A stretch of 64,000 nt of DNA from Macrostomum lignano (lineage: Eukaryota), in assembly GCA_002269645.1 (NCBI GenBank), contig NIVC01000352.1:248001-312000 (forward strand), written 5' to 3'. Shown here piece after piece: positions 17,489 to 55,265 of the stretch (the first letter of the stretch is position 1; each line of letters begins with the position of its first letter). The notes below the pieces were generated by a model. That model worked only from the letters and a program-made list of their open reading frames with translations. It was not told the DNA's origin and did not search any database. Made by a program: the position numbers and the translations under genes.

Positions 17489-19053
17489 TGGGAGGAGAAT
17501 GACTAACAAGCACAGCTAGGTGGATAAAATGACCCGGAGGAATTGACGATGGAACCGACCAAATTCGCTACCATTTTTACCTGTACAGTTTTTTGTTATT
17601 ATAGCTAGGTGTTCTTATACTATAGAAGCATGTGCACCCATTATGCTGTGATATACGTATTTTTAAGTAACCATTCGTAAGAAACTGATATTCTATAGGC
17701 TAAATCAGAATAAGCATCTCATTGGCTCAGGCAGCAGCATGCGGATCTATTTCCTTCGGCCCTGCATCTCCAGGAAGGAACCTAATTACCGAAGCCTATC
17801 TCTGGCCCTGCGCTAGCAGACTCGTTAGGGCCTGAGCTGAAATCCTAATTTTTCTTTAGAGCCAAGCCTCGGAGCTCAACTCTGTACAGATTTCTGAAGC
17901 AAGCTCGCTGCTTGCCAATGAAATGCAAATTCACTTAAACTGAGCAGATATGCTCTGCGAGGCGAATCTTTTTTGCATTGCCCGCGCCTCATCCGCAGAG
18001 GTGATCAATTGTGTATCAGCGATTTCTGCTCAGCAGATGTCTCATGCTGCATGCAATATAATTTTGTTTTCAATTAGAAGCTGTATGAAGTGAATTTGAC
18101 AATAATATTACTCAATTTCAATATGCATAATGTATAAAACTGAACGTTTTATGTTGTATGTTTCTGTTTTTCTGTTTGTGAAGTCATGCTGATCTCCCAG
18201 ACTCTGGTGACACTGAGGTAAATGTTGTTTGATTTCAAAAATAGCCATTTTTCAAGAATAATAGCGGCAGAACTGTTATTGCAATACTCGATGCCGTGAG
18301 CAGTTCTCATTTTGTAATCCAGTGTCTAAATTCTGTATCTGCGTAACTCTAAGTAAGACGTCTGTTTGGAAGGGGCGACTGATGACACACGGCCTGCTCT
18401 CCTCAGACCAGGCTTGAGTCCGGATTGCGATCCTTGGGGACATAATGGCTATCGTGCTCGGCCTGATGTCGGCCCCGGCATTCCCACGTCAGCGTCTCGT
18501 CATTTCCTGTCCAATTTTGCGTCATATAAATATGCATATTTTCATCTCATGGCTATTTTTTGTCATTCGCATGCAACAGACTGCCCTTTCCCGCCTCTGA
18601 ATTATCCCAACTGTACTTCTCGAATGTTGATGCAACCCAGCTGTTACGATAATTCATAATTAAGACATAGTGACTAAACATTCAATATATCGTAATTCTC
18701 TCTATTTTCACTTGTAAATTTTCGTCCGTCATTTTTCGCAAACGAAGTAGTTCTTAGTTTAACTTCTGTATTTTATTTATCAACTAAAGTCCCTTCTATA
18801 ATTAAATAAACCACCTACTCGATCTGCAGATATTTTAAGAGTTCATTTTTGTTAATATCGCTCCAGAGACCTTGAGTTGTCTAGCGCACAATCCAACAAA
18901 CACACGCATTTATTTAATTATCAAACAAGGACTCCTTAAACCTTAAACCTTAAACCAAGCCGACTTGAGCATCATTCCAGACTTACTAAATGTCCAGAGT
19001 TATTGCCATAAATTAACTGCCACTAATTTCGCTGTGGTTGCTTCAAGAATGCT

Positions 19054-20403
19054 TCAGTCAGCCTCCATCTGCATGGCCTCGACAGCCTGGCACGCCTTTT
19101 TATCCAACATCAACTGGAGGGGCATAAGAAACAGGACGGTAGACTGCTTCTCCACCGCGATGGCGCCCAGAGTCTGCAGGTAGCGAAGCCGCGCGCCCAT
19201 CGGCGTGCGCCCGATGACCGCAGCGGCTTCGCGTAACGTCAGGGCGGCCGTCAGCTCGCCCTCCGCTGCGATCACGCTGGCGTTCGCTTCGCGCTGCGCC
19301 TCCGCCTCTACAGCCATGGCGCGCTGCATCAGCACGGGCAGGCGAGCGTCCCGGACTTCGACTCGCTCTACCTGACATGCAAGAGGCATTGAAGAGGATG
19401 AAAATGCATGCTAGATTGCTAACAGTAGTACAGAGTGATAAATACACTTGTAAGCTCCTAAACTCAAAGAAGTCTATTAATGAGGGATCAGAGTTATTTT
19501 TCCCATAAAATTGTTATAGTTAATGTCTAACTCGTACAGTATATTACATAGTTTGGCAAGAGATTTCAAAGCCAACACAAGATTTTATTGACAACTTTCT
19601 GCTGCTTTGACTACTCATCAGACTCTGGGAAAGGCATTGTGCTCCCCAACTCGCCTTGACTCCCCACGGGTCGGTGGCAGCATCCAGGCTATCCTGCATG
19701 GCCAGCGCGATGGCACTCTTCTCGCTGAGAATCTCGTGCAGTGACTTGGTGCCCAGCGTGTTGCGCAGCGTTGTCTGCGCCATCAGCCTTGTGGCCCGAT
19801 GGACGTCGCACACTACAACGCTGGATTTCACCGGGTCGAATATTCGGTAGTAGACAACTGCGTCTACCGAGATGGTGACGGAGTCGCGAGTGAGAATCTC
19901 CTGCGGTGGAATGTTGAACGTCACGGTGCGCAGGTCCATCACGTGAACGCTGTCGATCAGCGCGTGGACGAAATACAAGCCCGGGCCTTGCAAGGTGGCG
20001 TTTTATAGCTGTTGTTATCCAGGATTTGATTGATCCAAGAATGACTCACCAATGAGCTCACCTCTGGCTCCGCGAACGCGTCCAAACCGGTAAATTACGG
20101 CCCGCTCATACTGCTGCACAACTCGAACGCAGAGCCATACGGACAGAGGAAATGTGAGTACAATGAGTACAGTGCTGCCGGCTACTAGTGCCAGCTGGCA
20201 TAACCGGACACCCAGGCTGTTGCTGTCATCACTGACGCCGTCGCGATACCCGATGCTCTCACTGCCGTTCTCAATCCAATCACTGGGGAGCTGATCTGGA
20301 AGGTGGAACTAATAGCTGTCGATGTTCTTTTCCCGAATATTCTAGCTTGCATTTCAACTCTTCCCGACTTTGGAATAAGTGCACACTGTACTTCACTGTC
20401 CAT
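19054..20403 (-). CDS. Stomatin / band 7 (SPFH) family protein, three coding exons
   Basis: Exon 20403-20062 (LTFPLSVWLCVRVVQQYERAVIYRFGR; the 5' part needs one frameshift), exon 19986-19655 (GPGLYF...DLRTVTFNIPPQEILTRDSVTISVDAVVYYRI...WGVK), exon 19371-19054 (VERVEVRD...MQRAMAVEAEAQREA...LRYLQTL). The second intron has a GC donor. Confidence 0.92.
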
Positions 20404-24757: not shown

Positions 24758-24984
24758 CTATTTTTAGAATCAGCCTCTCAGCCAACCAGATCGAGGCCCG
24801 GATTCCCTTATAGGGTCAGGAGGGGTGGCTGAGCCAGCAAGCCTCACCAGGGGAAGGGGTTGGCCTCATTTCCAACGTGCAGTCCACGAGCAAGGCGAGG
24901 CCGATGACTCAGTGCAGTTGGCTGGAGCTAAATTTAGCATCTGTGCCGCACAGCAAGCCAGAGCTCCGCGTCAGAGTATATAAA
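24758..24984 (+). promoter_or_regulatory. Immediate-early-type proximal promoter
   Basis: MEF2 consensus CTATTTTTAG 24758-24767; one-mismatch CArG CCCTTATAGG 24805-24814; AP-1 TGACTCA 24905-24911; CRE half site CGTCA about 24969-24973; TATATAAA 24977-24984. Confidence 0.6.
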
Positions 24985-25065
24985 GCTAGCCGATTAAGGA
25001 AACTGGCCACAAGGCCTTTCAAAGTATGCGCTACGCTTGCGACAGGACCTAAAAGATTAGCAGCA

Positions 25066-25935
25066 ATGCAGCAGCAGTCGGAGCAGCAGACGGCCCTTTC
25101 AGCTGGCCAAAACAACTCGGAGGTAGAGCCTGAGTTTGCCTACAAGATCTTGCAATGGTCAGTCGCAAAAATTGGTGATTCTCGCAGACGGAAAGGTGGA
25201 GTTGATCTTAGACAGAATCTTCTTCTAGCCAACACGCTGTGTAAAGCGCGAGACAGTCTGCTGGCTGCTAAAATGCAGCAACAGCAGGCTAGACAGATTG
25301 AGCAGCAGCAGATGCAGCAGATGGAGCAACAGAAGCTGGAGCAGCAGCAGCTGGAGCAGCAGATGCAGCAGATGGAGCAGAAGAAGCTGGAACAGCAGCA
25401 GAAGCTGGAGCAGCAGCAAAAGCTGGAGCAGCAAAAGCTGGAGCAGCAAAAGCTGGAGCAGCAAAAGCTGGAGCAGCAAAAGCTGGAGCAGCAAAAGCTG
25501 GAGCAGCAAAAGCTGGAGCAGCAAAAGCTGGAGCAGCAAAAGCTGGAGCAGCAGCAGCTAGAGCAGCAGAAGCTGGAGCAGCAGAAGCAGCGGCAGCAAC
25601 GGCAGCGGCAACAGCAGCAACTACGAAGGCAAAAACTGAAGCGGTCCGCTTCAATTGCGATCGACAACGAAGCTGCAGGATCGGAACCCGGCAAGCGGCC
25701 TTACCTGGAACACGGAACTCAACAGCAGCAGCAGCAGCAGGTGGCGGACCAAGCATCGAGCATTGGCATCTCCATCATTCCCCTGTCCCCGGCAGAGGCT
25801 GCCCGGCTGAGCCGCAGTCAGCCGGTGGTGTCACTCAGCCTGAGCCTCGCCGGCCAGCAGCAGCAGCAGCCGCTTATCTCGTGGACAGCACTGAGCGAGC
25901 CGGTTCACGGAGGCTGCGTGCTGACCTGCGCGTGA
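25066..25935 (+). CDS. Immediate early response (IER2/IER5-like) protein with a Gln-rich (EQQKL)n insertion, intronless, 289 aa
   Basis: AYKILQWSVAKIGDSRRRKGGVDLRQNLLLANTLCKARD aligns without gaps to the IER N-terminal motif ([39 protein letters not shown] in IER5, recalled from memory). The ATG lies about 80 nt after the TATA box. Confidence 0.75.
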   Translation: MQQQSEQQTALSAGQNNSEVEPEFAYKILQWSVAKIGDSRRRKGGVDLRQNLLLANTLCKARDSLLAAKMQQQQARQIEQQQMQQMEQQKLEQQQLEQQMQQMEQKKLEQQQKLEQQQKLEQQKLEQQKLEQQKLEQQKLEQQKLEQQKLEQQKLEQQKLEQQQLEQQKLEQQKQRQQRQRQQQQLRRQKLKRSASIAIDNEAAGSEPGKRPYLEHGTQQQQQQQVADQASSIGISIIPLSPAEAARLSRSQPVVSLSLSLAGQQQQQPLISWTALSEPVHGGCVLTCA

Positions 25936-31175: not shown

Positions 31176-31925
31176 CTATCTGCATGGTCTCAGGGCCGAA
31201 GCTTTCGTTGGCTGTTTTTGGTTGGCTTCGGCGCCTTTCAACGATCCAAGACCGCGTCGACGGCTGCTAAAAACCAGCATTACGATGACGGCAAAGAGCT
31301 GGGCAAGCAGCATTGCCGTCACCACCAGACAGATGAGCCAGCCGAAGCCAAGTCCGGTTTCGCTATTCATAGTCCGCGCCGAGCTCGCGCCCACCATGGG
31401 CACGTAGTCCGGCTCGTCGCAGACGTCTCCGGTCCAGCCCGAGGGGCACTGGCAGAAGACTCTCACTTTTGTCAGCGCCTGGCCGATTATGCAAAATTGT
31501 TGCGAGTGAAATTGATCAATTGGTGATGGAGTAATCAGATAAATAGCACTAATTAAGGAGGTAAACGCATCTGACTCTCTTGACTTGGGTCTTTGAGCTC
31601 GAAAAATTTGGTTGGTGGGTTTTTGTTCGATTCACACCCATCAGTGACAACCCCCAAGACACAGAGAGTATTCATGCCTGACGATTAGAGAGTCAGGGCT
31701 GCTGTACACCCCGTGTGAGCGGTGTGCATGAGTGCGTGCCTGAGTACAGAAATGGCGCGCTTGTATGTTCTCAGGAGTCAGCGGAATGGGCTGTTTGCGG
31801 GACGATGCTACCAAGGTAACTTTCACCTGACAGAAACCGCCCTCCAGACAGACGCTGCCGTACATGTCCCGGAGGATTTGCAGTTGGCTTTCGGTGCAAT
31901 TCTTCAGCAGCGTAAATGAACTCAT
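31176..31925 (-). CDS. Atypical EGF-domain single-pass membrane protein, paralogue 1 (133 aa)
   Basis: Exon 31925-31827 MSSFTLLKNCTESQLQILRDMYGSVCLEGGFCQ (donor GTGAAA); exon 31478-31176 ALTKVRVFCQCPSGWTGDVCDEPDYVPM..., then a TM helix and RRR. The phase-0 junction completes a six-Cys EGF module. Confidence 0.85.
31555..31812 (+). mobile_element. SINE family 2 copy in the intron of EGF paralogue 1
   Basis: Homologous to 39785-40085 at the equivalent intron position. Confidence 0.65.
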
Positions 31926-32654
31926 GACTTGCGCTTGTTAGCTTTCACTTGTTAGTCCATCAACAGGTGGCGACACGAAGTTTAAGTAATGCTCTCGCTT
32001 TTAGCAGGATGGAGGATTGCATGACAGAGTGACATATTTGCCAGTGAAACTTTCCCGCCCCAATTGAAGTAACAGAGTTGACACGGTGCTAATTAAGCGT
32101 GGGCGAGGGCTAGACAGACAGATTTTCCACAAAGTAAAAGCCGCCAGTCCGCGTTCTTCGCCCTACCCCGGTGCGAATGCCCACGCAACTATATGCGAAT
32201 GATTAGAGATATGCTTGTCAGTAATTTACTTTACAAGCTGTGTTGTACAAAGTAGCCCAAAAAAACTCGAATAAGGTTGCTTGTTGTTAAACGGGGGTGG
32301 GAGGAGAAGCGCTGCCCGCGGATCAGCCCTAGGGGGCTCTGCCGCATGGATCTAGCTGTGGGCCATACTACCAGGGGGCTTTAAGCCCGAGAGGCCACTA
32401 TTGGAACCAGAGCTCAGGACTCTGGGGAGAGCATGGAGCATTGGAGCTACTAACCCAAGCCTATGGACTAAAGACACCGCCAACCCAAAAGTGGAATCAG
32501 GCACGGTGCTAGGACAGAGTCCACTCAGGCCACCACCCAGCAGATAAGTCCCGGAAGTGCGCGAAAAAAGAATTGGAATGAAAAATGCTTGGGTTACTAC
32601 TGATAAGCGGTCCGAGAGCGGGGAGACCCTGAAGTCTCGGAAATGGCTTAATAT

Positions 32655-32977
32655 TGGAGTGAGTCTGGAAGGCTTGTATCCGAGGGCGAGACTCCTATCA
32701 GGCAGTGACCATGATACCTTATAGGGCTGCAAGCCACAAGGGTGTCACCTAACCAGCTCTATATTGGAATGAGTCTGGAAGGCTCCGAGGGCGAGTCTCC
32801 TATCAGGCAGTGACCATGATACCTTATAGGGCTGCAAGCCACAAGGGTGTCACCTAACCAGCTCTATATTGGAATGAGTCTGGAAGGCTCCGAGGGCGAG
32901 TCTCCTATCAGGCAGTGACCATGATACCTATAGGGCTGCAAGCCACAAGGGTGTCACCTATACCAGCTCTATATTGG
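32655..32977. repeat. 105-bp tandem repeat, 3 copies
   Basis: Unit starts recur at 32766 and 32871; the copies are near-identical. Confidence 0.9.
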
Positions 32978-34059
32978 AGGCCAGGCCAAGGGGGCGGAGA
33001 GGGGCACAAGGGGCAAGAGGAAACCGGACTCAGCCGGTTTTCCCCGATTCGGGACGAACATCTGCACATCAAAAAGGGTTTGGTGCTAATTTTTGTTTTC
33101 TTTCTCTCAACCGCGTCAGTACTTCAGCGTTTAGCGTTTGGAGTTCAGGGTCTCAACTCTGAAACGCAAAAGTACAAGTCACATTCGCATCACAATGGTG
33201 ATTCAGGTTAAGTAATCGAAAAAGAACTAACATCAGATGAGGATTTATGTGCGAGTAAGTGTCGCACTTTTGACTGGTAGCTCGAAATTGGAACTCTCCC
33301 TGTTGTGAGCGCGGAAACTAAGGGACGAGATTCAGTGTGGACGTAATGGGTCTGCAGATTTTTTGCTCCTAGTTTATTTTTTTCAACTGCCATCTCGTCA
33401 ACCAACTCGTCCACAAATGGAAAGGAACCACTCGTTTGGTCACTTCATCAACCCAGTTAACAAAACGGCAGTGGTGGTGGTGGTGGTGGTGGTGGTTCCC
33501 GGCCAGAGCTAGTCCGGGAGACGCGCCTCTGGAGGTACTCGAGCACGCGGCAGCCGTCTACGATGACGGACAGTGACGGGTTTGGTCCGAGGACCTCCGC
33601 CCGGATGTCTGCTTGTGTCGGGCATTGGATTATGAGGTATTCGTTGACATTTTGACATGCAATCAACCAATCAACCATCTAACAATGCTCTCCTACTTTC
33701 GAAAAAAGTGTTCCATTCACCTTCAACAGCAATTTTTTAATGTTTAAAAAGATTGCGAAAATGAATTTGACGAGTTCTGATCGATTGCTTGAACGAATGA
33801 ATATTTGGGTGAAATAAAAGTAAAGTAGAAATTAAAGTTAACTCAAGCAATGTCAATGTTTCAAAAAGATCAAAGAAAAACTGCATTCAATGAGTATTCA
33901 CTTCACCATAAAATTCTGGTGGGGCACGGGCCCTCTCACTTCGACACAATTCAGGCTGTTCTGAATGCGCTTGAACATTAGCAGGGGCGCCGACTGGGGC
34001 GCCGTCAAATCTCAGGTCGTCCTCGTCAGAGTTGTGCGGTTGCGCCGCTGGCTGCAATT

Positions 34060-34950
34060 GAGGGGCTGCAGGCGATTAAAATGCACGACCCTTTGCTTTC
34101 GTGCATTGGCCTCGGGCTGAATGCGGTAGGTGACATCCGAGATCTGCTTTTTAACGCGCCAAGGCCCAGTCCAACATCGATGAAATTTGCGACTCTCGCC
34201 TCGCTTCAGCGCCTGATTGTGCTGCCAGACCAGATCGTCCTCCCTGAATGCCTCGCCGTGGCACCTCCAGTCTTACGCTGCCTTCTGGCACAGTTGCGCT
34301 GCCTCCAAGTTTTGTCGCGCCGGCTCCGCAGCTCGGCCACTCATTCACAAGGACGGTGCGCATCCAGCGCCAAACCTCCGTATGCCAAGTCCAGTGGCAG
34401 CCGCAGTTCCCGGCCGAAGGTGTCTGACCAGTCGACATGTAGACTGAAGTGCGGTAGCCCATCAGTGCAATCTGCAGATAAAGATCCCAGTCTCGCTGAT
34501 TCTCGTTCACCCATGCTCGCAGCAGCTGCACCAGCGTCCGGTTCATCCGTTCGCAACCGCCTTCTCCTTCAGGGTGGTAGCCTGTCGTCCGAGTCTTGTC
34601 GATCTTCAGTACTCTCATCGTCTCTTGCACAGCTGCGACTCCGAGAGTTCCGACCCTGATCAGTGTGCACCGACTGTGGGACTCCAAAGCGAGCCACCAA
34701 ATTTCATTGTCCGCCTCGGAAGAGCTGGCCAGCTCACCCGCAGCCTGGTCACGTCCCCTGCCCAAGTAGCGCATCGAGACCGAAGACTGCTAAAATCGCA
34801 TCGAGGCTCTCTAAGACTATTCCGCTGATCCTGTCCTTCACAATTTTGAACACTTAGACTGCTGACAGCCTTTCGAGCCACGGTAGAGCTTGTGGCGAGC
34901 TTCACTGCTATCGCCTTCCAGAGGAAGCTTTACGACTTACGCCAACCTGT
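34060..34950 (-). pseudogene. Internally deleted Ty3/Gypsy remnant: PBS followed by a frameshifted integrase
   Basis: RFGVPQSVHTDQGRN, KTRTTGYHPEGEGGCERMNRTL, WDLYLQIALMGYRTSV..STGQTP, C-terminal WTGPWRV...VVHFNRL; PBS-like TGGCGTAAGTCG on the minus strand at 34944-34933. Confidence 0.8.
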
Positions 34951-35774
34951 CTTTAATTCTCAGGGTGTTAAACCTTAGGCTTTATTGTTAGTATCGGTCC
35001 CGCAGTCTGAAGCACTGCTTGAGCAAGCCATGAATGCAGGCAATGGACAGAGCCATTCGACGACGTCTGTAACAGACGAGCTTGGAGCCTGTGCCCACGT
35101 CTGAGGTTCATAAATTTACAGTTTGTAGGGCACAAGGTATGAGACCGTAAGTCAAAGCCAATTTCGATTTTACTTGAATGCTATCACCAAGCTCCATATT
35201 ACTCAATGCAGTCGAGTTTAGTAAAGTAAAGGCAGTATGCAGAAAGAGAATCAAAATTCAGAGATACTCGAGTAAGTGCGAATATTTCGTGAAGAAGTTA
35301 CAGTAAGCCAGGGACCTCACTAGAAAAACAAATTCGTGTTACTTTTAAAGTCGATGAATTGCTCTCAAAGAGCAAACACATGGGATATTAATAGGTCTTC
35401 TGAATTAGGAGAAATTCTAACTGGAAAACTTTTTTGCAGCACCCTAAACTGCAATACAGAAAAAATTTAGCTCGTAGTAAAATATAAAAGGGCAAGATAG
35501 CAGCACTTGCATAGCTGTGTACCGCAGTGAACTCAAACATGGAGGCCGCCTAAGTGAAATCAAGCAACTCGGGGCTTACGTACTCGTAGAAAAGTCACGG
35601 TAAAAAGAAACTTCAGTAAAATATGAGTTCCAAAGTCAAAAAAGAGCCAGAAGATAATATAAATACAAACTGTCAAATCAGTACAGAATCTTGCAAAAAT
35701 AACATCTAAAAGCGATGAGATAAATATTGTAGACTGCCATAGGATAAATCGATTGTACATTAATAAAAATTAGG

Positions 35775-36572
35775 TCAGGTGTCATTCTCCTCTACGGGCA
35801 GGACGGCGACACTCTCGGCTTTATCGGCCCTCTGAGGCTCGTGGCGTCGGCGACGGAGGTGACGATTGAGACTGTGCCGGTAAAGGACCACCCCGGCAAC
35901 TATGAACAGCACGATAGCTAGCAGGAAGGCCGCAACAAGGACTATTGAGAACAGGCCGCTCAGGCCGGCTCCGGAGCTGGCCATGGGTACGTAGTCCGGC
36001 TCGTCGCAGAGGTCACCCGTCCATCCGGTGGGGCACTGGCAGAAAAGTCGTCCCGGAGGAATCGACTTGAATAAAGATAGGGTTGGAATCGGTTATCATG
36101 GTTGCTTTGGTTATCTAGTTGGCTTACAAATGACTGTAGCTAGCCCCTCAGCTAGCGAGGAGATGAGCAGAATGTCAATTCCACTGACTTGTTCACGGAT
36201 TCATTAGGGTGTGTAGCATAGTAGTACACTTTGATCCAGACTTTTACATCTTCAAGTACTGCACATGTCTTTGTAACTCCTCGAGGGGTTGAACTGCCCG
36301 GCAATCTCCACGCCAATATTTGTGTGATAAACCCAAATTAAGGGTGGCCGAGAAAAAAAGTCAGATGCATTTACCACTGAGCTACTCTGCCTCAAGGGTC
36401 GTACTTGTACTCGTAGATTGCCTTCAACTCCCAGTTTACAGGGACCCTAAGGCAGCTGCGCAGTCCTTACCCGACAATGTCCGCCTTCCTGACACAAGCC
36501 GCCATACAGCTCGACGAGTATCGTCAGCTCCCGGTCTGTGCAGTTCGTGATCGGTGGCACCGTCATTCGCAT
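35775..36572 (-). CDS. Atypical EGF-domain single-pass membrane protein, paralogue 2 (about 130 aa)
   Basis: Exon 36572-36471 MRMTVPPITNCTDRELTILVELYGGLCQEGGHCR (donor GTAAGG; absent from the ORF track); exon 36065-35775 SIPPGRLFCQCPTGWTGDLCDEPDYVPM..., then a TM helix and RRRR. Confidence 0.85.
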
Positions 36573-36989
36573 TGTTGGCACCGTTTCTTGTTTATTGATT
36601 CTTGCTTGATTGAGCAGGGCTTAATTACCCGGTATTGTGGTTTATCAAGTTTATTGTCGTGTCAAGGGTATAGATGAAAGTAACTTGACGCGCGGAGGAG
36701 AGGCGCAAAGTGACAGTTGTTTTAGTTGTAAATCTTAGAGTAGAATAGGGCATAGAATGGACGGCAGGCTCAGGAGCGCTGCTTTAATAATACGTGTATG
36801 CGCTAAAGCGGGGGTGGCTGAGCAGGTGGGTAATGAGTGAGAGAAGTACTGCAAGCTGGACACGCTATGTATTTACTGCTGGCTGTGAGCCGACGCACAA
36901 TCATAAGTTTCAGTTTTGATAGTTTTTCATTTGTAGCAAGGGGTCGGAAAAATGTTTCACCTCAAGGCCAGATGGAGAATCCAGCGTAT

Positions 36990-37200
36990 GACTGCGGACC
37001 AGGTAGAGGAGAGAGGAAGTGGGAATAGAGAAGGGAGAAGAGAGATAGGAGAAAGGAGAGGAGGCGACGGAATAAATGAGAAGAGAGAAGACAAGAGGAG
37101 AGGAGAGAGGAGAGAAAGGAGAAGAGTAGAGAGGAAGAGAATAGAGAAAGAGAGGAGAGAGGAGACAAGAAGAGAGGAGAGATGAGAGAAAGGAGCTTGA
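36990..37200. repeat. GA-rich low-complexity tract
   Basis: Read directly. Confidence 0.8.
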
Positions 37201-37414
37201 TCAGACTGGATTGCTATTGTGAAGCTTCAGAGGATCCGAGGGCTGGATAAAGAGGCTTTGCTGGCTGCATGTGGCCCGCGGGCCGGACCCCTGATTCGCT
37301 GACCCCTGATTTTTAGCATTGATTTTATTGGCCACGGTACGCTCGTATTGCTACAGAGTCATAGAGATTTTTCTCGAGACCTGTTGTTTTACAAAATTGG
37401 GTCTTCTAGTGGCT

Positions 37415-38160
37415 CTTCTCTGACACCATGCAGACACTCCCTGACACCACAGACACTCCCTGACACCACAAACGGACACTCCCTGACACCACAGACACTC
37501 CCGGACACCACAGATACTCCCTGACACCACAGACACTCCCTGACACCACAGACACTCCCTGACGCCACAGAAACTCCCTGACACCACAGATACTCCCTGA
37601 CACTAAAAACGGACACTCCCTGACACCACAGACACTCCCTGACACCACAGACACTCCCTGACACCACAGACACTCCCTGACACCACAGACACTCCCTGAC
37701 ACCACAAACGGACACTCCCTGACACCACAGACACTCCCTGACGCCACAAACGGACACTCCCTGACACCACAGACACTCCCTGACACCACAAACGGACACT
37801 CCCTGACACCACAGACACTCCCTGACGCCACAAACGGACACTCCCTGACACCACAGACACTCCCTGACGCCACAAACGGACACTCCCTGACACCACAGAC
37901 ACTCCCTGACACCACAGACACTCCCTGACACCACAAACGGACACTCCCTGACACCACAGACACTCCCTGACACCACAAACGGACACTCCCTGACACCACA
38001 GACACTCCCTGACACCACAAACGGACACTCCCTGACACCACTGACACTCCCTGACACCACAGATACTCCCTGACACCACAAACGGACACTCCCTGACACC
38101 ACAGACACTCCCTGACACCACAGACACTCCCTGACACAAAAGATACTCCCTGACACCACA
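37415..38160. repeat. 19/23-bp tandem minisatellite (GACACTCCCTGACACCACA with or without AACG)
   Basis: Read directly; the VRECLWCQG-type ORFs are artefacts. Confidence 0.96.
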
Positions 38161-39374
38161 TCGGGGCGCCCAAAATTAAGTTATTCTTGACTAAAGCTGC
38201 CGTGCGCTGATTGACGTCTGTGCGATGTAAGCTCCTCTTTTATGCATCACAATAGCATCGCCTGTTTAACTGCACAAGGGCAAAGCATTACTTGCTACCG
38301 GCTCTTTAGGAGAGCTCAAATGCTTTTCGAATCTGTCGGGACTAAAAATAGCATTTGAGTTACAGATCATCAAAATTGAGCAAGGACCCCCACCGTGTTT
38401 ACACCTTTGGCTGAGGCTATGAAAGTGGTCCGTTGGTTACACATGGCGTGTATGAGCAGAATTAAGACACCGAGTTAGTAGTCTTAATTAGCGTATTAGG
38501 GCTATGCGGCATGCATTAAACGCGCATTAAACGCGCATTGCAATAAGCTAATAACAAAAAATATTTAACTACTGGCAGTAGGGCATATAGAACATAGTCT
38601 GCTACAAAGCAAAAAAGTTATTTTTCTAATTAAGACGTCAGTTTCCACATGAACAGTTACAGTCTGAGGTGGGTTGACAAGGTTGTTAAGGTCAATTTTT
38701 TTATGCTGCTGGAAGCTTTGAAATTTTAATTTGATAATTATTTCAGCCTGGTATCCACGTATTCAGTTTGTTTTACCGCGTGTGTTTCTAAGAAATACCG
38801 TACTGTTTAAAATGCATTTTAATCGCCAGTCGCAAGTGCAGCAACGCCCAACCCACCAGTGAACCGAGCTTCTATCACATTTATCTACTTCTAACACCAT
38901 GGACACAATTTACCATTGTATGATTTTGGAGGGGTATTTTCGAGTCTACCGATAATCTACCGATGCACGCCTTTTCGAATGTCAACAGGCAGTAGTGTAT
39001 GTCGATTGGCCGAATCCCGATTGCATGGCCTCTTGTCTGGAAAAACCTGCCTTCGCACGCAAAAAAAGTAGCTGCATTTGATTCGCATTTCCGTGCTGCC
39101 GAAACCAATTGCATAGAAAGGAATCCGCACACTTTGCAATGTTTTATTTTTCAAATGTGCATAATTATATTCGTTGCAAGTTCGAGATATGCTAAGTCGA
39201 AAAAATATTGTTAAATGAATGTCTGGTATCATGGCTCAATTTGTCGAAATGGGATGTTAGATTTGAAACACACATTGATCTGTTATTATCCTAAAGGGAA
39301 TCCATAAATATCAATATACATCAATATATACATATATTGTATATCAATGCATCAGTAAAAAGCAAAGAAAAAGT

Positions 39375-40228
39375 TCAGGACTTCAACTGAGCGCCTTCAG
39401 CGCCGATAATGAGCTGATCGAATTGCAGATTGTGGCTGCCCGCATTCTCTAGGCTGCTGGTTGAGCTGGCTACCAGCAGTTCGATGTGCCGCCGGCGTCG
39501 CTTAGTTGCCATAGCAACAGCTACGAAGGAAGCCACTGCCAGCAGGGCCAGCAGCACAGCGGCAGCGGCCAGGATGAGCAGAACCGGCCAGCCGCTCGGG
39601 GCCGGTCGAGACAGGCTGGCGCCCACCATGGGCACGTAGTCGGGCTCGTCACAGACGTCCCCGGTCCAGCCCGACGGGCACTGGCAGAAGACTCTCACTT
39701 TTGTCAGAGCCTAAAGGCGATGATGCAAGTGAAATTGGACAATTGTATGATAGAGTTACCGTTAGCAGATAAAAACACTAATTGTTGGTGCCGGAGCAGC
39801 TCAGAGGTAAAGGCATCTGCTAGCTGCCTCTCGTACCACGACCCCTGGTTCGATTCCGCGGTGCACGCTCATCTTAATTTGAGGCTTTGAGTACGAAAAA
39901 TTGGCCAGGGGTTTTGAGCGATTTACAAGCATGAGGGCCAACCTCCAAGGCACAGAGAGTGTACATGCCTGCATGACGATTAGAAAGGCAGGGCCGTGGT
40001 GCATCCTGTGTGAGCGTGTGTGCATGTATGACGTGTTCAGGAGTCAGCAGAAAGGGCCAGGGTTCTTACAACTCCCCTGCGAGTAATAATTGTTAGATTA
40101 TCACTAATTATTCAAGCCTTAATTGTCACCTGACAGAAACCGCCCTCCAGACAGACGCTGCCGTACATGTCCCGGAGGATTTGCAGTTGGCTTTCGGTGC
40201 AATTCTTCAGCAACGGAAATGAACTCAT
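39375..40228 (-). CDS. Atypical EGF-domain single-pass membrane protein, paralogue 3 (144 aa)
   Basis: Exon 40228-40130 MSSFPLLKNCTESQLQILRDMYGSVCLEGGFCQ (donor GTGACA); exon 39710-39375 ALTKVRVFCQCPSGWTGDVCDEPDYVPM..., then a TM helix and KRRRR. Confidence 0.85.
39785..40085 (+). mobile_element. tRNA-derived SINE family 2, most complete copy
   Basis: A-box-like AGCTCAGAGGTAAAG and B-box GGTTCGATTCC precede the shared family body. Confidence 0.72.
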
Positions 40229-40800
40229 GACTGTATTTGATATGGCTGTAATTCTTAGTCTATCGACAGGTAGCAGCACGAATTTTGGGTAATACTCTCG
40301 TTTTTAGCGGGATGGAGGATTGATTGCAGAGCGGTATATTTATAGCCAAGCAAGTGTGGCATTGCCCCTCCCCAATTGAAGTAATAGTTGACATGCTATT
40401 AAGCGTGGGCGAGGGCTAGACAGACAGGCCTGCCACAAAGTAAAAGATGGTCCGCGTTCTTCGCTCTACCCCCCAAAAACAAGCAAGAATGCGAATGCCC
40501 TCGAAACTGTATGCCAATGATGAGAGATGATACGCTTGTCGGCAATTCATTTTACAAGGTTGTTACTTAGAGAAATTCCGTTTTTTGGTTGTTTGAAATA
40601 ACGTCCAAAAAATAGGTTTGTTTTGCTTCAGGTTGTAAACACAATGAAATTACGAGCGTAAAAAGTAGAACGGCGAGAATTTATGAGTAATGTGTCGCAC
40701 TCTGGACTGTAGCTCGAAAAGGAACATTCGAACTCACGCTGTTGTCCTTTAGCGCAGAAACCTAAAGGACAAGATTTAGTCAAGGTCCTTGGACCTTGAC

Positions 40801-43680
40801 CGAAGCTGCAACAAGGCCTAGGGCAAGAAGTGCGATAGCTGTGGCAAGATGAACCACCTCGCTAAGGCTTGTCTCAGTAGCCGTTCGCGCATCAACGCAC
40901 TTGGCCACAACTCGGACGAACCGACCGACCAGTCATACGAGGAAGTGTTCTGCACGCTGGAAGACAAGAACGGGAGCGCAAAGTTCGTCATCAGCATCAA
41001 CGGCCACGCAGTCAGGGCGCTCATCGACAGCGGAGCGAGCTGCAGCGTGCTCGACCTGTGCACCTTCAGGCGGATCAGCAACCCGGGCACCAGGATCGAG
41101 CCCTGCAGCACAAGGGTTTTCCCACTTGGCGCAAGCCAACCGCTGGCCGTTGAGGGACAAGCCAGGCTGATCGTGTCGGCAAACGGGCACAAGCTGCAGC
41201 CGAACTTCATCATCATAAAAAGCAGCTGCACCCCATCATCGGAAGACAGACCAGCACCGAGCTCGGCATGCTACAGGTCGGCCCAGGAGCCAACAAGCAA
41301 CCCGTATTAGTGACAGGTCTCACCGGGTCACGAAACATCAACGACCAGCACCCGACCGACAACCCGCAGCTGCAAAGCGTCCTGACCGAATTCGAGGATA
41401 GGTTTCACGGCATCGGCTGCGTCAAAGGCGTCCGCGTTACCATCAAGCTGCGTCCCGAAGCCACGCCAACATGCCAAGCACCGTCACGCGTGCCAGTGCA
41501 CCTCAGAGACGCCGTCAGAAAAGAGCTGGAAGAGCAGCTTGCTCAGGGCATCATCGAGCGTGTCCACGGACCTACAGCATGGTGCTCAAGAATGGTGGCT
41601 GTTCCAAAGGACGACAAGGGACAAGGGAATCCGCATCACCCAGGATCTCCGCGAGGTCAACAAATTCGTGATTCCCGAGAAGCAACCGATTCCCACATTT
41701 AAGGAGGTTACGGACGAGATGTTTCTCAGAGTTAGATGTCGCCAAGGCCTTTCATCAAATCGAGGTGGCCGAAGATTCGAGGGAGCTCCTGACCTTCTCA
41801 ACGCCACTAGGCCTTATGCGACTGAGGCGCCTCTGCATGGGCTATACGTCAGCCTCCGAAATCCTGCAGCGCGTGATGACGACTGTTCTGAGCGGACTCC
41901 CGGCGTGCGCTGGGTACACGACGACATCCTCATCTACGCCAAGTGTATCGAAGAGCACAACCAGCGACTGCGCGACTGTCTGCAGCGGCTGCGAGACCAT
42001 AATATCACCCTCAACAGGGCGAAGTGCAGGTTCGCGCAGCAAGAAGTCGACTTCCTCGCCATGCGCCTCACAGCAGCCGGAATCCATCCCAGCACAGAGA
42101 AGGTGGCGGCCATTAACTGCTTCTAAAGACCGACCAAACGCTACCGAGGTCAGCCTCGTCACCTTTGTCGCTCGCTTCATTAGCAACCTGTCCGACAGGG
42201 CACGGCCGCTCCGAGATCTGACAAAGCACGGGGCAGAGTGGACGTGGGGCGACCATCAAGAAGCAGCTTTCATCGACATCAAGCGCACGTTAGCCAGTAG
42301 CCAGGCGCTGGCATCCTTCAGCAAAGACCTGCAGTCCCAGCTGATTGTCGATGCCAGTCCAACCAGAGCCGGCGTCATCCTAGCCCAAGTGCAGCCTGAT
42401 GGTTCGATTCGACCGGTGGCCTACGCGAGCCGCAGCCTCAGCGCCACCGCGAGCAGCGGTACTCGCAGACCGAGCGCGAGGCACTCGCAGTAAAGTATGG
42501 CTGCCTAAAATTTCATCATTATCTAAGCGGCTGTGAGCACTTTAAAGTCATAACTGACCACAGACCGCTCGTCTCGATGTTCAGCCCAGGATCTCGGCCG
42601 CATGGGTCTCGAACACATGGCTCTCCGACTGCAGGACCTTGCCTTCAGCGTCGTTTACCAGCCCGGAGCCGGAAACCCGTCCGACGTGCTCAGCCGGCAA
42701 CCGCTACCGCAGCCGCCAAACAACGGAGGCGAGCGGGCCGACGCAGCGTTCGTTGCCATGGTCATACAGGCAGCGACTTCGGTGTCTCTCAGCATATCAG
42801 CGATCAAGGCGGCTTTGGAGCAGGACCCGACAGTGCAGGCTGCATGCCGCGCCATTCGCACCGGCAGCAGATCTGAAGGACATCCGAGGCGTCAGGCACG
42901 AGCTGTCGGAACACGATGGCCTCCTATTGCGCGGCAGCCAGCTGTTCGTGCCTGGGGTGCTGCGGTTCCGGTGCCTTCAACTGGCCTATCAAGGACACCA
43001 AGGCATGCGGAAGACACTAGACCGCCTGCAGTCAAAGGTGTGGTGGCCCGGCATGCGCTCGGCAGTGGAGACTCATGTGGCCACCTGCATCAGCTGCACG
43101 GCCTGTAACAGCGAGGCGACTACGAAGGCAACGCCCTTGAAGCCGTCGGATCTGCCGGATGGGCCGTGGCTCGATCTCGGCCTTGACTTCCTGGGGCCCG
43201 TCGAAGAAAAGTCGTTACTCGTCTGCACCGATCACTTTTCTCGATTTCCGCTGGTTGAATTTATGGCAGACACAACGGCCGCCGCCACCATACGCGTGCT
43301 CAGACGGTGGTTTAGCATCTTCGGCCAGCCGCTCAAGGTGTCAACCGACAACGGGCCGCCTTTCTCATCATCGGATTTCACCAGCTTCATGAAAGACCAA
43401 GGAGTCCACCATCGTCGGATCACGCCGCTCTACCCGTAGGCTAACGGAGCCACCGAGCACTGCAACAAGGGGCCTCAACAAAGCCATACGCGCAGATGTC
43501 GCCGAAGGCAAAGACTGGACGGCAGCTGTCGACGAATACCTGGCCGCGTACCGGCGCACGCCGCACAGCTCGACAGGAGTCGCCCCAGCTAACCTGCTCT
43601 TCGGACGCCAATTCAATGACACAATCCCCAGTCTTCACCACTCGCGACCTGTGAAAGCGACGCTTGTACATCGGCCTTGC
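40801..43680 (+). pseudogene. Decayed Ty3/Gypsy gag-pol (zinc knuckle, protease, RT, RNase H, integrase) with multiple frameshifts and stops
   Basis: CDSCGKMNHLAKAC knuckle; ALIDSGAS protease; VHDDILIY RT; LIVDAS..LAQ..RPVAYASRSL RNase H; GHQG..C..C, LDFLGP, TDNGPPFSS, ITPLYP*ANG integrase. No flanking LTR pair was found. Confidence 0.93.
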
Positions 43681-46138: not shown

Positions 46139-48454
46139 ATGAATTCCGTTCACTTTCAGCTCAAAAGCAACTGCTTCTTTAGTATGCCATCAAAGAAGCA
46201 GCGCGCTCGCGAGTCTTATAAAAAATGGGAGAATAAAAAGCGTTCCGCTGATCTTGAGGGATTCAAAGAGCAGAATCGATTGAGACAAAAAAAGTTCTAT
46301 TACAAACAAAAAAGTATCATGGAATCGGACGCAGTAAAAGACCAGAGAAGACGTCAGATTAAGCCTAATTCAAGGAATGATACTAAACAGATTAAGAGCA
46401 CTGCGAATGAGCGATTGAGTCGGTCTGAGGCTGCTAAGCAGCGGGAGATGAGAAAGAAAAAGGAAGAAATTTCGCGTTTGCTTGAACGGTTGAAGAAGGT
46501 GGAAGAAGAAAATAAAAAGCTGAAGCAGCAGAAGCGGCGAAGATCTAAGGCTGCTGTTTCTAGACAAGGTGCCTCTGACGATTCAGATGCCGCCGTCAAG
46601 CATATTGTGGATAGCGTCGTAGCAGTGAAACGAAAGAAGCACATGCAAGGCGTAGTTCGGCGCATTTGTGAGACTGCTGAGACTCCTGGAGTAAGAAAAG
46701 AGGTGCTCCGGCGATTGCACTGTTCCGGGAAAATTTTGAAGCCGCTTCCACCGCCAAAAGTGAAAAAGTTGCCAATGGCTGTTTCGGATTTTTTGTGTGA
46801 GGACCAAAACTCACGGGCGACTGCTGGAAGAAAAGAGACCGTGCTCAGAGGGTCGGAAAAGAAGCAGAAACGCTATCTTCTTTACGGAATGCAGATTTTG
46901 TACGAAAAATTTCTGTCTGAACACCCGACTGTAAAATGTAGCAGGGCTTCATTTTACCGTTACAAGCCGCCACATGTGCTTCAACCAAAAGTAGGCAATC
47001 GAGAACAGTGCCTGTGCCCACTGTGCACCAACGTCGACCTTTTGGTTGAAGGAATTTGTAAAGCAAAGCTAATAGATTCAACAGCTGACAAGCATGATCT
47101 TCTACGGAAGATTGTTTGCTCAGACGAGTCGTACAACTGTCTGAACAATATATGCCAGAAGTGCACTCAGCTTTCTCCTATCAAAGCTGGCGCCGCTGCT
47201 AATCAGCCAATTGTTGTGTACGACAAGTGGAAGCGTAGGACTGATGCGAATGGCATGGAGGTTGTAAAGAAAACGATGAACTGTGAGTTTGCCATAGCAA
47301 AACTTTTGAAACATTTGCGCAAATATGGCGCCCACTTCCTGCGCCTCCGACATCAATTTCGCGCTATTCGTCAGCTGAAGGACAATCTGGGCGAGCACCA
47401 CCTGGTGCTACACATTGATTTTAGCGAAGCGTATGGCGCAAAGTACCACCGCGAGACGCAACCAGCCCATTTTGGAGACCGCGGGCAGGTTACAATTCAC
47501 CAGGGTGTCGCCTACGGGGTGTGTGAACGGCGAGGTGTGTCATTTGCTTCTCTGTCGTTGGACCGCAACAAGAAGGCGGAAGCAATTGTTGCACACCTGC
47601 TACCTGTACTGAAGCACTTTTTATCCGTCTTAGGTGAAGTTGAGCGAGTCACCATCATTTCCGACTCCCCCAGCAGCCAATACCGCAACAGAATGACAAT
47701 TTTTTTGTTTGATCGACTGTTGCGGCGAATTGGCATCCATCGCTGGCAGTGGATCTTCACCGAGGCTGGCCACGGCAAGGGTGCCGCTGACGGTGTGGGA
47801 GCGGCCATTAAGCGGCGTTGCGACAACCGGGTGTCTACAGGTGAGCAGAGGCAGGTGGTCACGGTGCAGGACATGATGGAGGCAATGATGATCGGTGGCA
47901 GTAATGAAGAGAAAAAGATTTTGCTTTTCGAGGTTACAACCAGTGACATCGAGGAGTTTGGAAATGTGCTGCAGATGGTGAACCTGTCTACAATGCCGGG
48001 CATTGCCAACTGCCACCACGTCTGCCGAGTTGATGAAAGCGGCATCTTGTATCGGGAGCTGGTCTGTCTCTGCACAAAAGCTAATGATTACTGTCGGTGC
48101 CACAACGCTAGACTGTGGCAACCGCTGGCTTTGCCACCGATGCCAAGACAGCAGACAGTGCTTTCGGTGAAAGATGCAGCTGGTGCCGCAAGGTGTTCAA
48201 CTGGCAAGCGTGTCAGGGGTCAAGAGCGAGGTCGGGGTCATGGTAAGTCGGGGACTGAGGTCGAGCGCTGCAGTTCTACCATCTGTATTCAGCCTGCAAG
48301 TTTGAGAATCCAGTGGATTCAATGCGATGGCTGTGATGCCTGGCATCATTGTGAATGTGCTGGCTTTCCACCAAAGAGCAACCTGCCACAAAACTATTAT
48401 TGCTCACCTGATTGCGCCTTCGACCTCACACAGGCTGAGATGAGGGAACTTTGA
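46139..48454 (+). CDS. DDD-type transposase (Sola2-like) with Cys-rich region and C-terminal PHD finger, 771 aa, uninterrupted
   Basis: HIDFSEAY, IISDSPSSQYRN, EAGHGKGAADGVGAAIKR catalytic-type motifs; CLCPLC..C..C..C cluster; C-terminal CSSTIC..WIQCDGCDAWHHCEC..YYCSPDC (C4HC3). Confidence 0.85.
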   Translation: MNSVHFQLKSNCFFSMPSKKQRARESYKKWENKKRSADLEGFKEQNRLRQKKFYYKQKSIMESDAVKDQRRRQIKPNSRNDTKQIKSTANERLSRSEAAKQREMRKKKEEISRLLERLKKVEEENKKLKQQKRRRSKAAVSRQGASDDSDAAVKHIVDSVVAVKRKKHMQGVVRRICETAETPGVRKEVLRRLHCSGKILKPLPPPKVKKLPMAVSDFLCEDQNSRATAGRKETVLRGSEKKQKRYLLYGMQILYEKFLSEHPTVKCSRASFYRYKPPHVLQPKVGNREQCLCPLCTNVDLLVEGICKAKLIDSTADKHDLLRKIVCSDESYNCLNNICQKCTQLSPIKAGAAANQPIVVYDKWKRRTDANGMEVVKKTMNCEFAIAKLLKHLRKYGAHFLRLRHQFRAIRQLKDNLGEHHLVLHIDFSEAYGAKYHRETQPAHFGDRGQVTIHQGVAYGVCERRGVSFASLSLDRNKKAEAIVAHLLPVLKHFLSVLGEVERVTIISDSPSSQYRNRMTIFLFDRLLRRIGIHRWQWIFTEAGHGKGAADGVGAAIKRRCDNRVSTGEQRQVVTVQDMMEAMMIGGSNEEKKILLFEVTTSDIEEFGNVLQMVNLSTMPGIANCHHVCRVDESGILYRELVCLCTKANDYCRCHNARLWQPLALPPMPRQQTVLSVKDAAGAARCSTGKRVRGQERGRGHGKSGTEVERCSSTICIQPASLRIQWIQCDGCDAWHHCECAGFPPKSNLPQNYYCSPDCAFDLTQAEMREL

Positions 48455-53483: not shown

Positions 53484-55265
53484 ATGTCAAAGGGTATCAA
53501 CTACAGCAAGTGGGACCACATCGAGGTCTCCGATGACGAGGACGACACTCACCCGAATATTGACACGCCCTCGCTGTTCCGCTGGCGCCACGAGGCCCGA
53601 GTCAAGCGCATGGAGGAGCTGGCCAAGGAGAAGTCGGACTTCGAAGCCGAATGGAAGCAGGTCGCCAGCCAGATTGATGAGGCCCAGCGTCAGGCAGATG
53701 CTGGAGACTCAGCGGCTGCCAGTAGGCTGGCCCAGCTCAAGGACCGGCTGAGCAAGCTGGAGGCCCATCGCCAGGAGCTGGCCAAGAAGGAGAAGTCTCA
53801 GCCGCTGAACATCGACACCATCTGCAAGGAGGGCAAGACCAGGACAATTATTAATAAGGCGGCCGCCCAGCCGCCGAAGCCTCGCACCGATGAGGAGACT
53901 TGGAAAAATCTCGAAGAATTTAAACAAAAATACGACAAAGAGATTAAAAAGTTTGGCATGTTCTCCAAATTTGATGACGCCCAGCGATTTCTTGAGGAGC
54001 ATACGCATCTGGTTTGCGAAGCCGCCTGCGACCGATTGGTGCTGTGGTGCGTCGATCTGGCAGTTGAAGAGAAAGCCAGCCTGCTTGAATACGTTACCAA
54101 GCAGTGCATCTGCCTTCAGTTCCTGCTGAAACTCGGCGCCGAGCTGGGCACCGATCCGCGCAACTGTCTGCGCCAGTTCTACGCCCGCCTGCGCGATCCC
54201 CAGCCCGAGTACATGCGGGCATTTGAAGAGGAGCTGGCCGCGTTCAGGTGAGACATTGTCAATTTTTCCTATTGTTGCAGATTTATTAGCAGGACAGGAA
54301 CTGGTTAAACCTAATTTTATTGCCCTCATTATGCCAGATTCTCAGGATGACCAGCCTCACAGATCCTCAGGTTCATGGCAGCACACCTCACAGATCCTCA
54401 GGTTGATGACAGCACACCTACCAGATCCTCAGGTTGATGGCAGCACACCTCCCAGATCCTCAGGTTCATGGCAGCACACCTACCAGATCCTCAGGTTGAT
54501 GGCAGCACACCTCCCAGATCCTCAGGTTGATGGCAGCGCACCTCACAGATCCTCAGGTTGATGGCAGCATGCTGCACACCTACCAGATCCTCAGGTTGAT
54601 GGCAGCATGCTGCACACCTACCAGATCCTCAGGTTGATGGCGGCCACCCTCGCTGATCCTTAAGAGGCTCAGGTCATCATTCTTCCAGCTCTTTACAGCT
54701 GCTCGCAGAGGGATGTCTGTCGATAAGATAGTCAGGCCCGTTGTTCAACATGTGTGATTGCGTGCCTGCTAACAGTACCTGTGTTGCGCGCTCACAAATT
54801 TAAATTTCAATCCAAATACTCCTAGCTAATTAGCACTAACTGCTCTTCCCATCTACTCAATTCCCTTGCAGACAGCGGGTCCAGGATCGGGCCAAAGCTC
54901 GCCTAGAAGACGCCATGCGCGAATATGAGGAGGAACAGCGCCAGGCCCGGCTGGGCCCCGGCGGCCTGGACCCGGTTGAAGTGTTCGACAGCCTGCCCGA
55001 CTCGCTTAAGGCCTGCTTCGAGTCCAAAGACATTGCTCTGCTGCAGAAGACCCTAGCCGAGATGCCCATAGATGAGGCGCGCTATCATATGAAACGCTGC
55101 GTCGATAGCGGCATGTGGGTGCCCGACGCTTCGTCTAAAAAGCTTCTGGAAGGCGATGAGGCCGGCGCGGAGGCTGCGGGAGAGTCCGAGGAGGAGGCGG
55201 AGGGGGAGGCTGCGAGTGAGGGCAGAGATAAGAGCGAAGGCGATTACGCTGATCCAACCGCCTAA
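53484..55265 (+). CDS. CDC37: Hsp90 co-chaperone Cdc37, two coding exons (53484-54247, 54872-55265), 385 aa
   Basis: INYSKWDHIEVSDDEDDTHPNIDTPSLFRWRH N-terminus, LGPGGLDPVEVFDSLP and RCVDSGMWVP; the phase-2 GTGAGA...TTGCAG intron joins the exons in frame. Confidence 0.98.
54345..54655. repeat. 31-bp minisatellite in the CDC37 intron
   Basis: CAGATCCTCAGGTTGATGGCAGCACACCTAC, about 9 units. Confidence 0.9.

Follow-up and report, generated by a model that had tools for sequence, protein, structure and literature searches.

The canonical ErbB ligands (EGF, TGF-alpha, HB-EGF, NRG1, NRG4, Spitz and Keren) carry one epidermal growth factor (EGF) module beside a transmembrane (TM) helix, and their intron lies between Cys4 and Cys5 of this module. 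NRG1 and NRG4 are devoid of a signal peptide, NRG4 being an EGF-TM protein of ~115 amino acids. In planarians, the five genes Smed-egf-1, -2, -3, -4 and -5 have been described as putative EGF-type ligands of EGFR, the criterion for a ligand being a TM precursor with a single EGF module alone in its ectodomain (Barberan, Martin-Duran & Cebria 2016, PMC4914847). Expression data exist for Smed-egf-3, -4 and -5, and RNA interference with these three gave no phenotype. In the flatworm Macrostomum lignano, eight EGFRs but only two ligands were identified (PMC4914847). We describe here three M. lignano genes, named c1, c2 and c3 and read directly from a window of 64,000 nucleotides (assembly GCA_002269645.1; window position x is position x + 248000 of contig NIVC01000352.1). 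Like the planarian candidates, they encode TM precursors with a single EGF module and nothing else in the ectodomain. Their likeliest role is that of EGF-type ligands, tethered to the membrane or shed, a reading to which we assign a probability of about 0.5.

All three genes lie on the minus strand and consist of two exons, encoding proteins of 133 (c1), 130 (c2) and 144 (c3) residues. An earlier note on this DNA had claimed as much, and direct reading bore out its coordinates. Every intron runs from a GT donor to an AG acceptor and is in phase 0; its position, one codon past Cys3, differs from that in the canonical ligands. A stop codon ends each reading frame, the c2 start codon is at 36572, and tblastn detects exactly three copies in the window. 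The cysteine spacing, C-x15-C-x5-C-x9-C-x-C-x8-C, is identical in c1, c2 and c3. Cys1 is preceded by 9-10 residues and is part of an N-C-T sequon, while Cys6 is followed by the motif DEPDYVPM. Each protein then displays one strongly hydrophobic window of 19 residues (mean Kyte-Doolittle value 2.8-3.3) and a basic tail; the earlier note had listed these shared features, and all of them are present. The net charge is -2 to -4 in the ectodomain and +3 to +5 in the first 15 residues past the TM segment, a distribution that agrees with the positive-inside rule. No signal peptide is visible. The only Pfam matches are to the generic EGF and EGF_2 families and begin at Cys2. With EGF (PF00008), all three proteins score above the gathering threshold (22.0-22.4 versus 21.5); with EGF_2 (PF07974), c1 (24.0) and c2 (22.3) are above the threshold of 22.1 and c3 (21.9) is just under it. 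The first loop had been thought amphipathic, an idea that lacks statistical support: its helical hydrophobic moment of 0.33-0.37, compared with a shuffle mean of 0.25, is reached by 15-26% of shuffled sequences. AlphaFold2 predicts, with low confidence, a helix at residues 12-22 in this loop.

Comparison of c1 and c3 over 64 ectodomain codons reveals seven synonymous differences and a single non-synonymous one (dN 0.007, dS 0.19, the rates per non-synonymous and synonymous site; binomial P=1.6e-4 with 150 non-synonymous and 42 synonymous sites). With the older paralogue c2, c1 gives a dN/dS of about 0.21. By these measures c1-c3 are real coding genes, intact and selectively maintained. The identity of c1 and c3 amounts to 98% in exon 1 and 94% in the 5' part of exon 2, versus 83% upstream and 76%, over aligned pairs, in the intron. 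The homology ends abruptly inside exon 2, after ..DEPDYVPMVGAS, and the TM segments, tails and 3' flanks are unalignable. This mosaic is consistent with a tract of about 0.9 kb that arose by gene conversion or partial duplication. The pattern indicates that selection acts on the ectodomain of c1 and c3, the anchors and tails being apparently interchangeable.

When a profile of c1-c3 was run exhaustively with HMMER against 1.84 billion cluster representatives, 108 matches were obtained, the majority of them multi-EGF or EGF-plus-TM proteins aligned from Cys2 on. Only three had an alignment that begins ahead of Cys1 and continues across the TM segment, namely P0008 (151 residues; profile positions 7-103, E 7e-14), P0037 (117 residues; positions 8-106, E 9.6e-6) and P0089 (121 residues). 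P0008 corresponds to the M. lignano hypothetical protein PAA62311.1/PAA55319.1 (BOX15_Mlig002914g1/Mlig030020g1) and P0037/P0110 to PAA62310.1/PAA55318.1 (Mlig022086g1/g2); UniProt names both paralogues 'EGF-like domain-containing protein'. They are stand-alone genes, encoding 118-151 residues. P0008 and P0110 lie in tandem on NIVC01001952.1, 8.4 kb apart (extract positions 10001-10456 and 18844-19352), and the pair is present twice in the assembly, once on a 219-kb contig and once on an 81-kb contig, in agreement with the large-scale duplication known for the DV1 genome (PMC5730564).

Like c1-c3, P0008 and P0110 are arranged in tandem and have a Met plus 5-8 residues before an N-C-T at Cys1, one TM helix, a basic tail and no signal peptide. 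P0008 also has the 15/5/9/1/8 spacing, whereas the spacing of P0110 is 16/5/13/1/8. After Cys6 they have a D-x-P-D-[YF] or Y-M-P motif where c1-c3 have DEPDYVPM. Unlike c1-c3, to which they are 30-43% identical, they have no intron in the EGF module, lie on another contig and are annotated. Since this annotation is transcript-based, both have transcript support. The absence of a signal peptide, which the earlier note had stated for c1-c3, is a family trait, because both annotated paralogues begin likewise. The intronless P0008 reads GGYCRKIPPGKLYCQC exactly at the c2 splice point (GGHCR/SIPPGRLFCQC), and this continuity validates the c2 junction. The Macrostomum family comprises at least five distinct genes: c1, c2, c3 and the tandem pair on the other contig. 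A five-sequence family profile recovered only its own members from 5.8 billion clusters, and a word-indexed protein search with c2 gave no match at E<=10. The earlier note's proposal of a tandem family, restricted to the lineage, of minimal single-EGF proteins tethered to the membrane is supported. The idea that the system is undescribed does not hold in full, since the two paralogues are deposited as hypothetical proteins and Smed-egf-3, -4 and -5 have the same unusual layout. We found no paper mentioning Mlig002914, Mlig022086 or Mlig030020, and no fragment of c1-c3 or P0008 in the supplement of Barberan et al. (PMC4914847), which lists a single 'M. lignano EGF' ligand and in which the text obtained by optical character recognition (OCR) is partly illegible. 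P0089, P0056 and P0021, from metatranscriptome, Logan and JGI data, are small EGF-TM proteins without a signal peptide that gave weak scores; P0089 (Tara Oceans metatranscriptome) starts with MTHYI-NCT and has a first loop of 9 residues. They could be remote relatives from other marine invertebrates.

We conclude from the acidic ectodomain, the basic cluster past the TM segment, the six cysteines and the sequon that c1-c3 are probably type III membrane proteins with one N-glycosylated EGF module. By analogy, NRG1, NRG4 and the planarian genes offer a precedent for this layout. Such proteins would span the membrane once, with the N-terminus outside and without cleavage of a signal peptide. The TM helix would serve as a reverse signal-anchor, its orientation being set by the acidic ectodomain and the RRRR cluster past the TM segment. 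The extracellular part, ~60 residues long, would contain the six-Cys EGF-like module, the sequon on the Asn before Cys1 and the conserved acidic and aromatic DEPDYVPM. It would be the functional part, kept near-invariant by selection, with exchangeable TM segments and tails. In the proposed mode of action, c1-c3 would be membrane-tethered EGF-type pro-ligands in the manner of neuregulin-4, TGF-alpha, Spitz and Smed-egf-3/-4/-5, the module being either presented to a receptor on an adjoining cell or freed by juxtamembrane or intramembrane cleavage. The leading candidate receptor would be found in the expanded EGFR family of M. lignano. Since no Arg precedes Cys6, binding would be non-canonical or the partner a different one. 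The start of the c2 TM segment reads ASSGAGLSG (35950-35990), the equivalent place being VGAS in c1 and c3. By eye, and speculatively, it resembles ASIASGA, the stretch of small residues in Drosophila Spitz that is required by Rhomboid.

The likeness to Smed-egf-3, -4 and -5 starts at the N-terminus. Smed-egf-3 begins MERNCTADELLYEKDKTFC... and Smed-egf-4 begins MYKNCSITESLDEFGEKLC...; like c1-c3, the three planarian proteins have no signal peptide, Cys1 being residue 5 after a Met and 3-4 further residues. Smed-egf-3 and -4 have N-C-T/S at Cys1, as c1-c3 have N-C-T, and the first loop is acidic and extended in both groups (13 residues in Smed-egf, 15 in c1-c3). Past the single EGF module of Smed-egf-3/-4/-5 comes a [TS]-Y-[YF]-D-P (YYDPF-type) motif after Cys6, with the TM segment 14-17 residues on and a short tail. 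The short N-terminus without signal peptide, the sequon at Cys1, the acidic loop and the EGF module next to the TM segment are thus all found in c1-c3. Three points separate the two groups: Smed-egf-3/-4/-5 keep the Arg before Cys6, which the Macrostomum family does not, they have 4 residues instead of 5 between Cys2 and Cys3, and their B-loop has 14 residues instead of 9. The sequon at Cys1 is rare elsewhere. N-C-[ST] occurs at this place in all Macrostomum family members, in Smed-egf-3 and -4 and in several spiralian EGF-type ligand candidates, compared with 6 of 764 EGF patterns (0.8%) among the non-family matches.

Profile comparison by hhalign aligns the family with Smed-egf-3/-4/-5 at 91.8% probability (E 7e-7), with the six cysteines and N-C-T in register, with the spiralian EGF-type candidates at 98.5% (E 3.7e-15) from N-C-T on, and with the canonical ligands at 97.4% from Cys2 on. 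We give these ligand-group probabilities reduced weight because generic EGF repeats scored higher in controls. Reciprocal hidden Markov model (HMM) scores between the family and Smed-egf are about 0-6 bits. Homology of the Macrostomum and Smed-egf proteins beyond the EGF fold is not demonstrated by these comparisons. In its architecture the family is an already known one, that of a single-EGF pro-ligand, in a form closest to the flatworm candidates.

With the canonical ErbB ligands, c1-c3 share, besides the single EGF module adjoining a TM helix, the GxxGxxC with which the module ends, the L/Q-x-G-G past Cys2 and an aromatic or hydrophobic residue five positions after Cys6. This position (Leu47 of EGF) is Tyr or Phe in 5/5 family members and hydrophobic in 20/28 known or putative ligands, versus about 18% of generic repeats. 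Several observations weigh against a role as ligands. As the earlier note had rightly stated, c1-c3 depart from ErbB ligands not only in the place of the intron but also in the length of the first loop and in the residue before Cys6. Between Cys1 and Cys2 there are 15 residues, where canonical ligands have 7-10, and the B-loop is only 9 residues long. The residue before Cys6 (Arg41 of EGF) is Arg in 27/28 ligands; it is V, L and V in c1, c2 and c3, respectively, and I in P0008 and P0110. A cross-validated HMM discriminant, ligand minus generic, gives -12.8 for c1, -12.1 for c2, -10.0 for P0008 and -7.7 for P0110, outside the range of held-out ligands (-1.7 to +27.1, median +15.3, 26/28 positive); for held-out generic repeats the median is -20.4 (4/140 positive). 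It must be noted that the generic set consists of the family's own matches, which biases the result towards 'generic' and limits it to moderate weight. The HMM of the family ectodomain scores generic EGF repeats at 25-36 bits and ligands at 5-20 bits, and a profile of Smed-egf-3/-4/-5 favours known ligands while ranking the Macrostomum family 62nd-120th, at noise level. Structure prediction does not discriminate: two AlphaFold2 runs gave low-confidence models (pLDDT 53 and 63), and Foldseek against PDB found nothing below E 0.34, with matches mixed among EGF, Notch, Jagged and COX EGF modules. Finally, c1-c3 are missing from the transcript-based annotation of the assembly.

Part of this evidence could mean that c1-c3 are surface proteins without action on EGFR, carrying a generic module of the Notch/fibropellin type for adhesion, recognition or the cis-regulation of another receptor, their pro-ligand-like architecture being convergent. 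We consider this possible but rather doubtful. Both the discriminant and the cross-profile tests group the family with generic repeats, and these tests, confined as they are to sequence, do not place the module with the EGFR ligands. The Cys2-Cys6 core (C-x-E/N-G-G-x-C ... C-x-C-P-x-G-W-T-G-D-x-C) has its best scores with the hEGF/Notch-type repeats of Notch1, fibropellin and adhesive plaque proteins. A hydrophobic residue before Cys6, found in none of the ligands, occurs in 38% of generic repeats. Among PDB sequence matches, Notch1 repeats are on top, mixed with EGF, TGF-alpha and NRG1. On the ligand side, the EGF/TGF-alpha chimera 1gk5 (E 1.2e-3) and mouse EGF rank among the best single-domain matches. 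However, generic repeats occur as tandem arrays within large proteins, secreted or of type I, and have short first loops, and adhesion proteins are normally multi-domain, whereas a lone module fixed directly to a TM helix is the layout of a pro-ligand. The long first loop and the conserved motif past Cys6, with its ligand-like aromatic residue, set c1-c3 further apart from such repeats, and the comparison set itself is biased towards the family, as said. Calcium-binding EGF (cbEGF) modules have the consensus [DN]-x-[DN]-[EQ]-C before Cys1. By reading, c1-c3 do not conform to it, the residues in question being LLKN or PITN.

Notch co-ligands with a DOS motif were also considered. OSM-11, DOS-1 to DOS-3 and DLK1 (PMC2504490) are, like c1-c3, small proteins in which the EGF-like motif is the sole recognisable part, some of them with a C-terminal TM segment; unlike c1-c3, they have signal peptides. 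This candidate was rejected, since c1-c3 have six cysteines spaced 15/5/9/1/8, whereas the DOS consensus, C-x3-C-x(3,8)-C-x(2,5)-C-[KVER]-C-x(10,12)-C-x(1,3)-P-x(6,9)-C-x(1,4)-W-x(1,4)-C, requires eight, starting with C-x3-C (Komatsu et al. 2008, PMC2504490).

A narrower version of the ligand reading holds that the family consists of Macrostomum-specific true EGFR ligands, in which the otherwise near-universal salt bridge between Arg41 of the ligand and Asp355 of the receptor has been replaced by a hydrophobic contact, the family having co-evolved with the lineage-specific EGFR expansion. This appears unlikely. At the loop matching human FRGDSF, M. lignano EGFR-4 has LKGIPF and EGFR-7 has FSEKSL, in an unreliable alignment with a gappy loop and OCR-noisy published sequences.

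The GenBank annotation of the assembly derives from a genome-guided transcriptome, drops novel transcripts below 0.5 reads per kilobase per million (RPKM) and leaves out any model overlapping a repeat (Wudarski et al. 2017, PMC5730564). c1-c3 are not found in a collection of 15 billion proteins that includes Logan/SRA assemblies, although their neighbour genes are present there, which means that they are unannotated. The earlier note was right to suspect that annotation misses these genes; its explanation, a failure to join the exons, was wrong, since the annotation is transcript-based and applies RPKM and repeat filters. With such filters the gap suggests that expression is low or conditional, or that the repeat filter removed the models. 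It could also be read to mean that c1-c3 are silent or decaying products of a recent tandem duplication, which have no transcription or have lost it, their frames being intact through recent origin or through gene conversion from expressed paralogues. The TATA region of c1 is indeed degenerate compared with that of c3, and the copies are separated by minisatellites and by fragments of retrotransposons. Silence is nevertheless quite improbable. Open reading frames (ORFs), start codons, splice sites and stops are intact in 3/3 genes, and both the 7:1 ratio of synonymous to non-synonymous differences between c1 and c3 and the low dN/dS with c2 require selection at the protein level. Moreover, the annotation also drops repeat-overlapping models, and stretches resembling tRNAs or short interspersed elements (SINEs) can be seen by eye in the c2 and c3 introns; overlap with the repeat annotation could be the cause of the absence.

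Could the gene models be incomplete at the 5' end? An acceptor-like AG lies 2 nt 5' of the ATG in c1 (CAAG/TCATG, 31927-31928) and c3 (ACAG/TCATG, 40230-40231), and the annotated intron in the 5' untranslated region (5'-UTR) of P0110 ends at the same place (TCAG/AACATG, NIVC01001952.1 extract ~18996-18998). The AG may therefore mark the end of a 5'-UTR intron or an acceptor for a spliced leader, and an upstream exon probably exists. It is nonetheless very unlikely that such an exon brings in a signal peptide or further domains, or that the units are alternative 3' ends of a larger gene, since the upstream exon of P0110 contributes one Met codon only, with an in-frame TAG four codons before it, the intronless P0008 has an in-frame TGA four codons upstream, in 5/5 paralogues the Asn of N-C-T follows an ATG at a distance of 5-10 codons, Smed-egf-3/-4/-5 likewise start just before Cys1, and each unit has a TM segment and a stop codon of its own. 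In c1, an in-frame TAA occurs at 31940, five codons 5' of the ATG. Neither are c1-c3 exons of one large multi-EGF gene, as shown by the separate TM segment, tail and stop of each and by the stand-alone nature of the annotated paralogues.

Table 1. Features of the c1, c2 and c3 genes (window positions)
Feature	Positions	Strand	Description
c1 exon 1 CDS (coding sequence)	31827..31925	-	Met1-Gln33: MSSFTLLK-NCT, first loop, Cys2, Cys3; donor CAG/GTGAAA
c1 intron	31479..31826	-	348 nt, phase 0, GT..AG
c1 exon 2 CDS + stop	31176..31478	-	Cys4-Cys6, DEPDYVPM, TM (about residues 81-99), SSRRRG tail
c2 exon 1 CDS	36471..36572	-	MRMTVPPIT-NCT..GGHCR; donor CGG/GTAAGG
c2 intron	36066..36470	-	405 nt, phase 0; tRNA-like stretch inside
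c2 exon 2 CDS + stop	35775..36065	-	SIPPGRLFCQCPTGWTGDLC-DEPDYVPM, ASSGAG juxtamembrane, TM (about residues 72-90), RRRRH tail
c3 exon 1 CDS	40130..40228	-	2/99 nt different from c1 exon 1
c3 intron	39711..40129	-	419 nt, phase 0; ~50 nt insertion relative to c1 intron
c3 exon 2 CDS + stop	39375..39710	-	C-terminal half of EGF module, DEPDYVPM, TM (about residues 76-94), KRRRRH, 50-aa tail
Candidate core promoter of c3	40338..40344	-	TATAAAT 116 nt 5' of ATG, behind CAATTGG block conserved with c1; by reading only
c1 side of c1/c3 homology tract	31383..32244	-	Upstream region, exon 1, intron, exon 2 up to ..VGAS
c3 side of c1/c3 homology tract	39615..40564	-	Putative gene-conversion or partial-duplication tract

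Several repeats lie around the three genes. About 37 copies of a 19-nt minisatellite, CTGACACCACAGACACTCC, occupy 37420-38160 between c2 and c3, 3.1 copies of a 105-nt repeat (32651-32978) are present upstream of c1, and a (GAGAAGA)n tract is found at 37078-37190. Directly upstream of c3 are the pol ORFs of a long terminal repeat (LTR) retrotransposon (Integrase_H2C2 and rve, 40849-43439, plus strand), and an integrase-like fragment with no Pfam match at 1e-3 lies between c1 and c2 (34151-34774, minus strand). The tRNA-like or SINE-like stretches are at ~36360-36395 in the c2 intron and at ~39800-39870 in the c3 intron, the latter being an insertion relative to the c1 intron; Rfam and ARAGORN made no calls in the window, these stretches included.

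An intact ORF of 771 residues (46139-48454, plus strand) ends, by eye, in a Cys/His-rich, PHD-like region. It has no Pfam match, is not in the public protein collection, and may be transposon-derived or an unannotated gene. Another ORF, of 116 residues (1917-2267, plus strand), has a signal-peptide-like N-terminus, a TM segment, a basic stretch and 'RRPDYY' in the ectodomain, with no Pfam match; its resemblance to the family is at chance level (tblastn, E 1.6). Other neighbours are a single-exon rhodopsin-type G protein-coupled receptor gene (16229-17488, plus strand), Band_7/stomatin-like exons (19054-19993, minus strand), a Gln-rich ORF with KLEQQ repeats (24877-25935, plus strand), Cdc37 (53484-55265, plus strand), the N-terminal exon of which (53484-54248) is 100% identical to BOX15_Mlig015904g1, and FYVE/PH genes (59686-60243, plus strand, with two annotated downstream). 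The contig segment around Cdc37 (NIVC01000352.1:291484-313265) is 100% identical to 43484-64000 of the window.

Among flatworms, M. lignano serves as a regenerating model with transgenesis, and in planarians and tapeworms EGFR signalling governs how stem cells behave and how organs regenerate. In this setting the family, with at least five small EGF-TM genes of which three are missing in the deposited annotation, offers concrete candidates for the missing EGFR ligands of M. lignano. They also illustrate that type III EGF proteins can escape searches that require a signal peptide or use transcript-filtered annotations. If the family were made up of salt-bridge-free EGFR ligands, this would account for the finding of eight receptors with only two recognised ligands; if the partner is not EGFR, the family would be a compact case of a pro-ligand architecture that has been reused. 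What makes c1-c3 interesting is chiefly that they are candidate orphan ligands in an animal in which regeneration is tractable.

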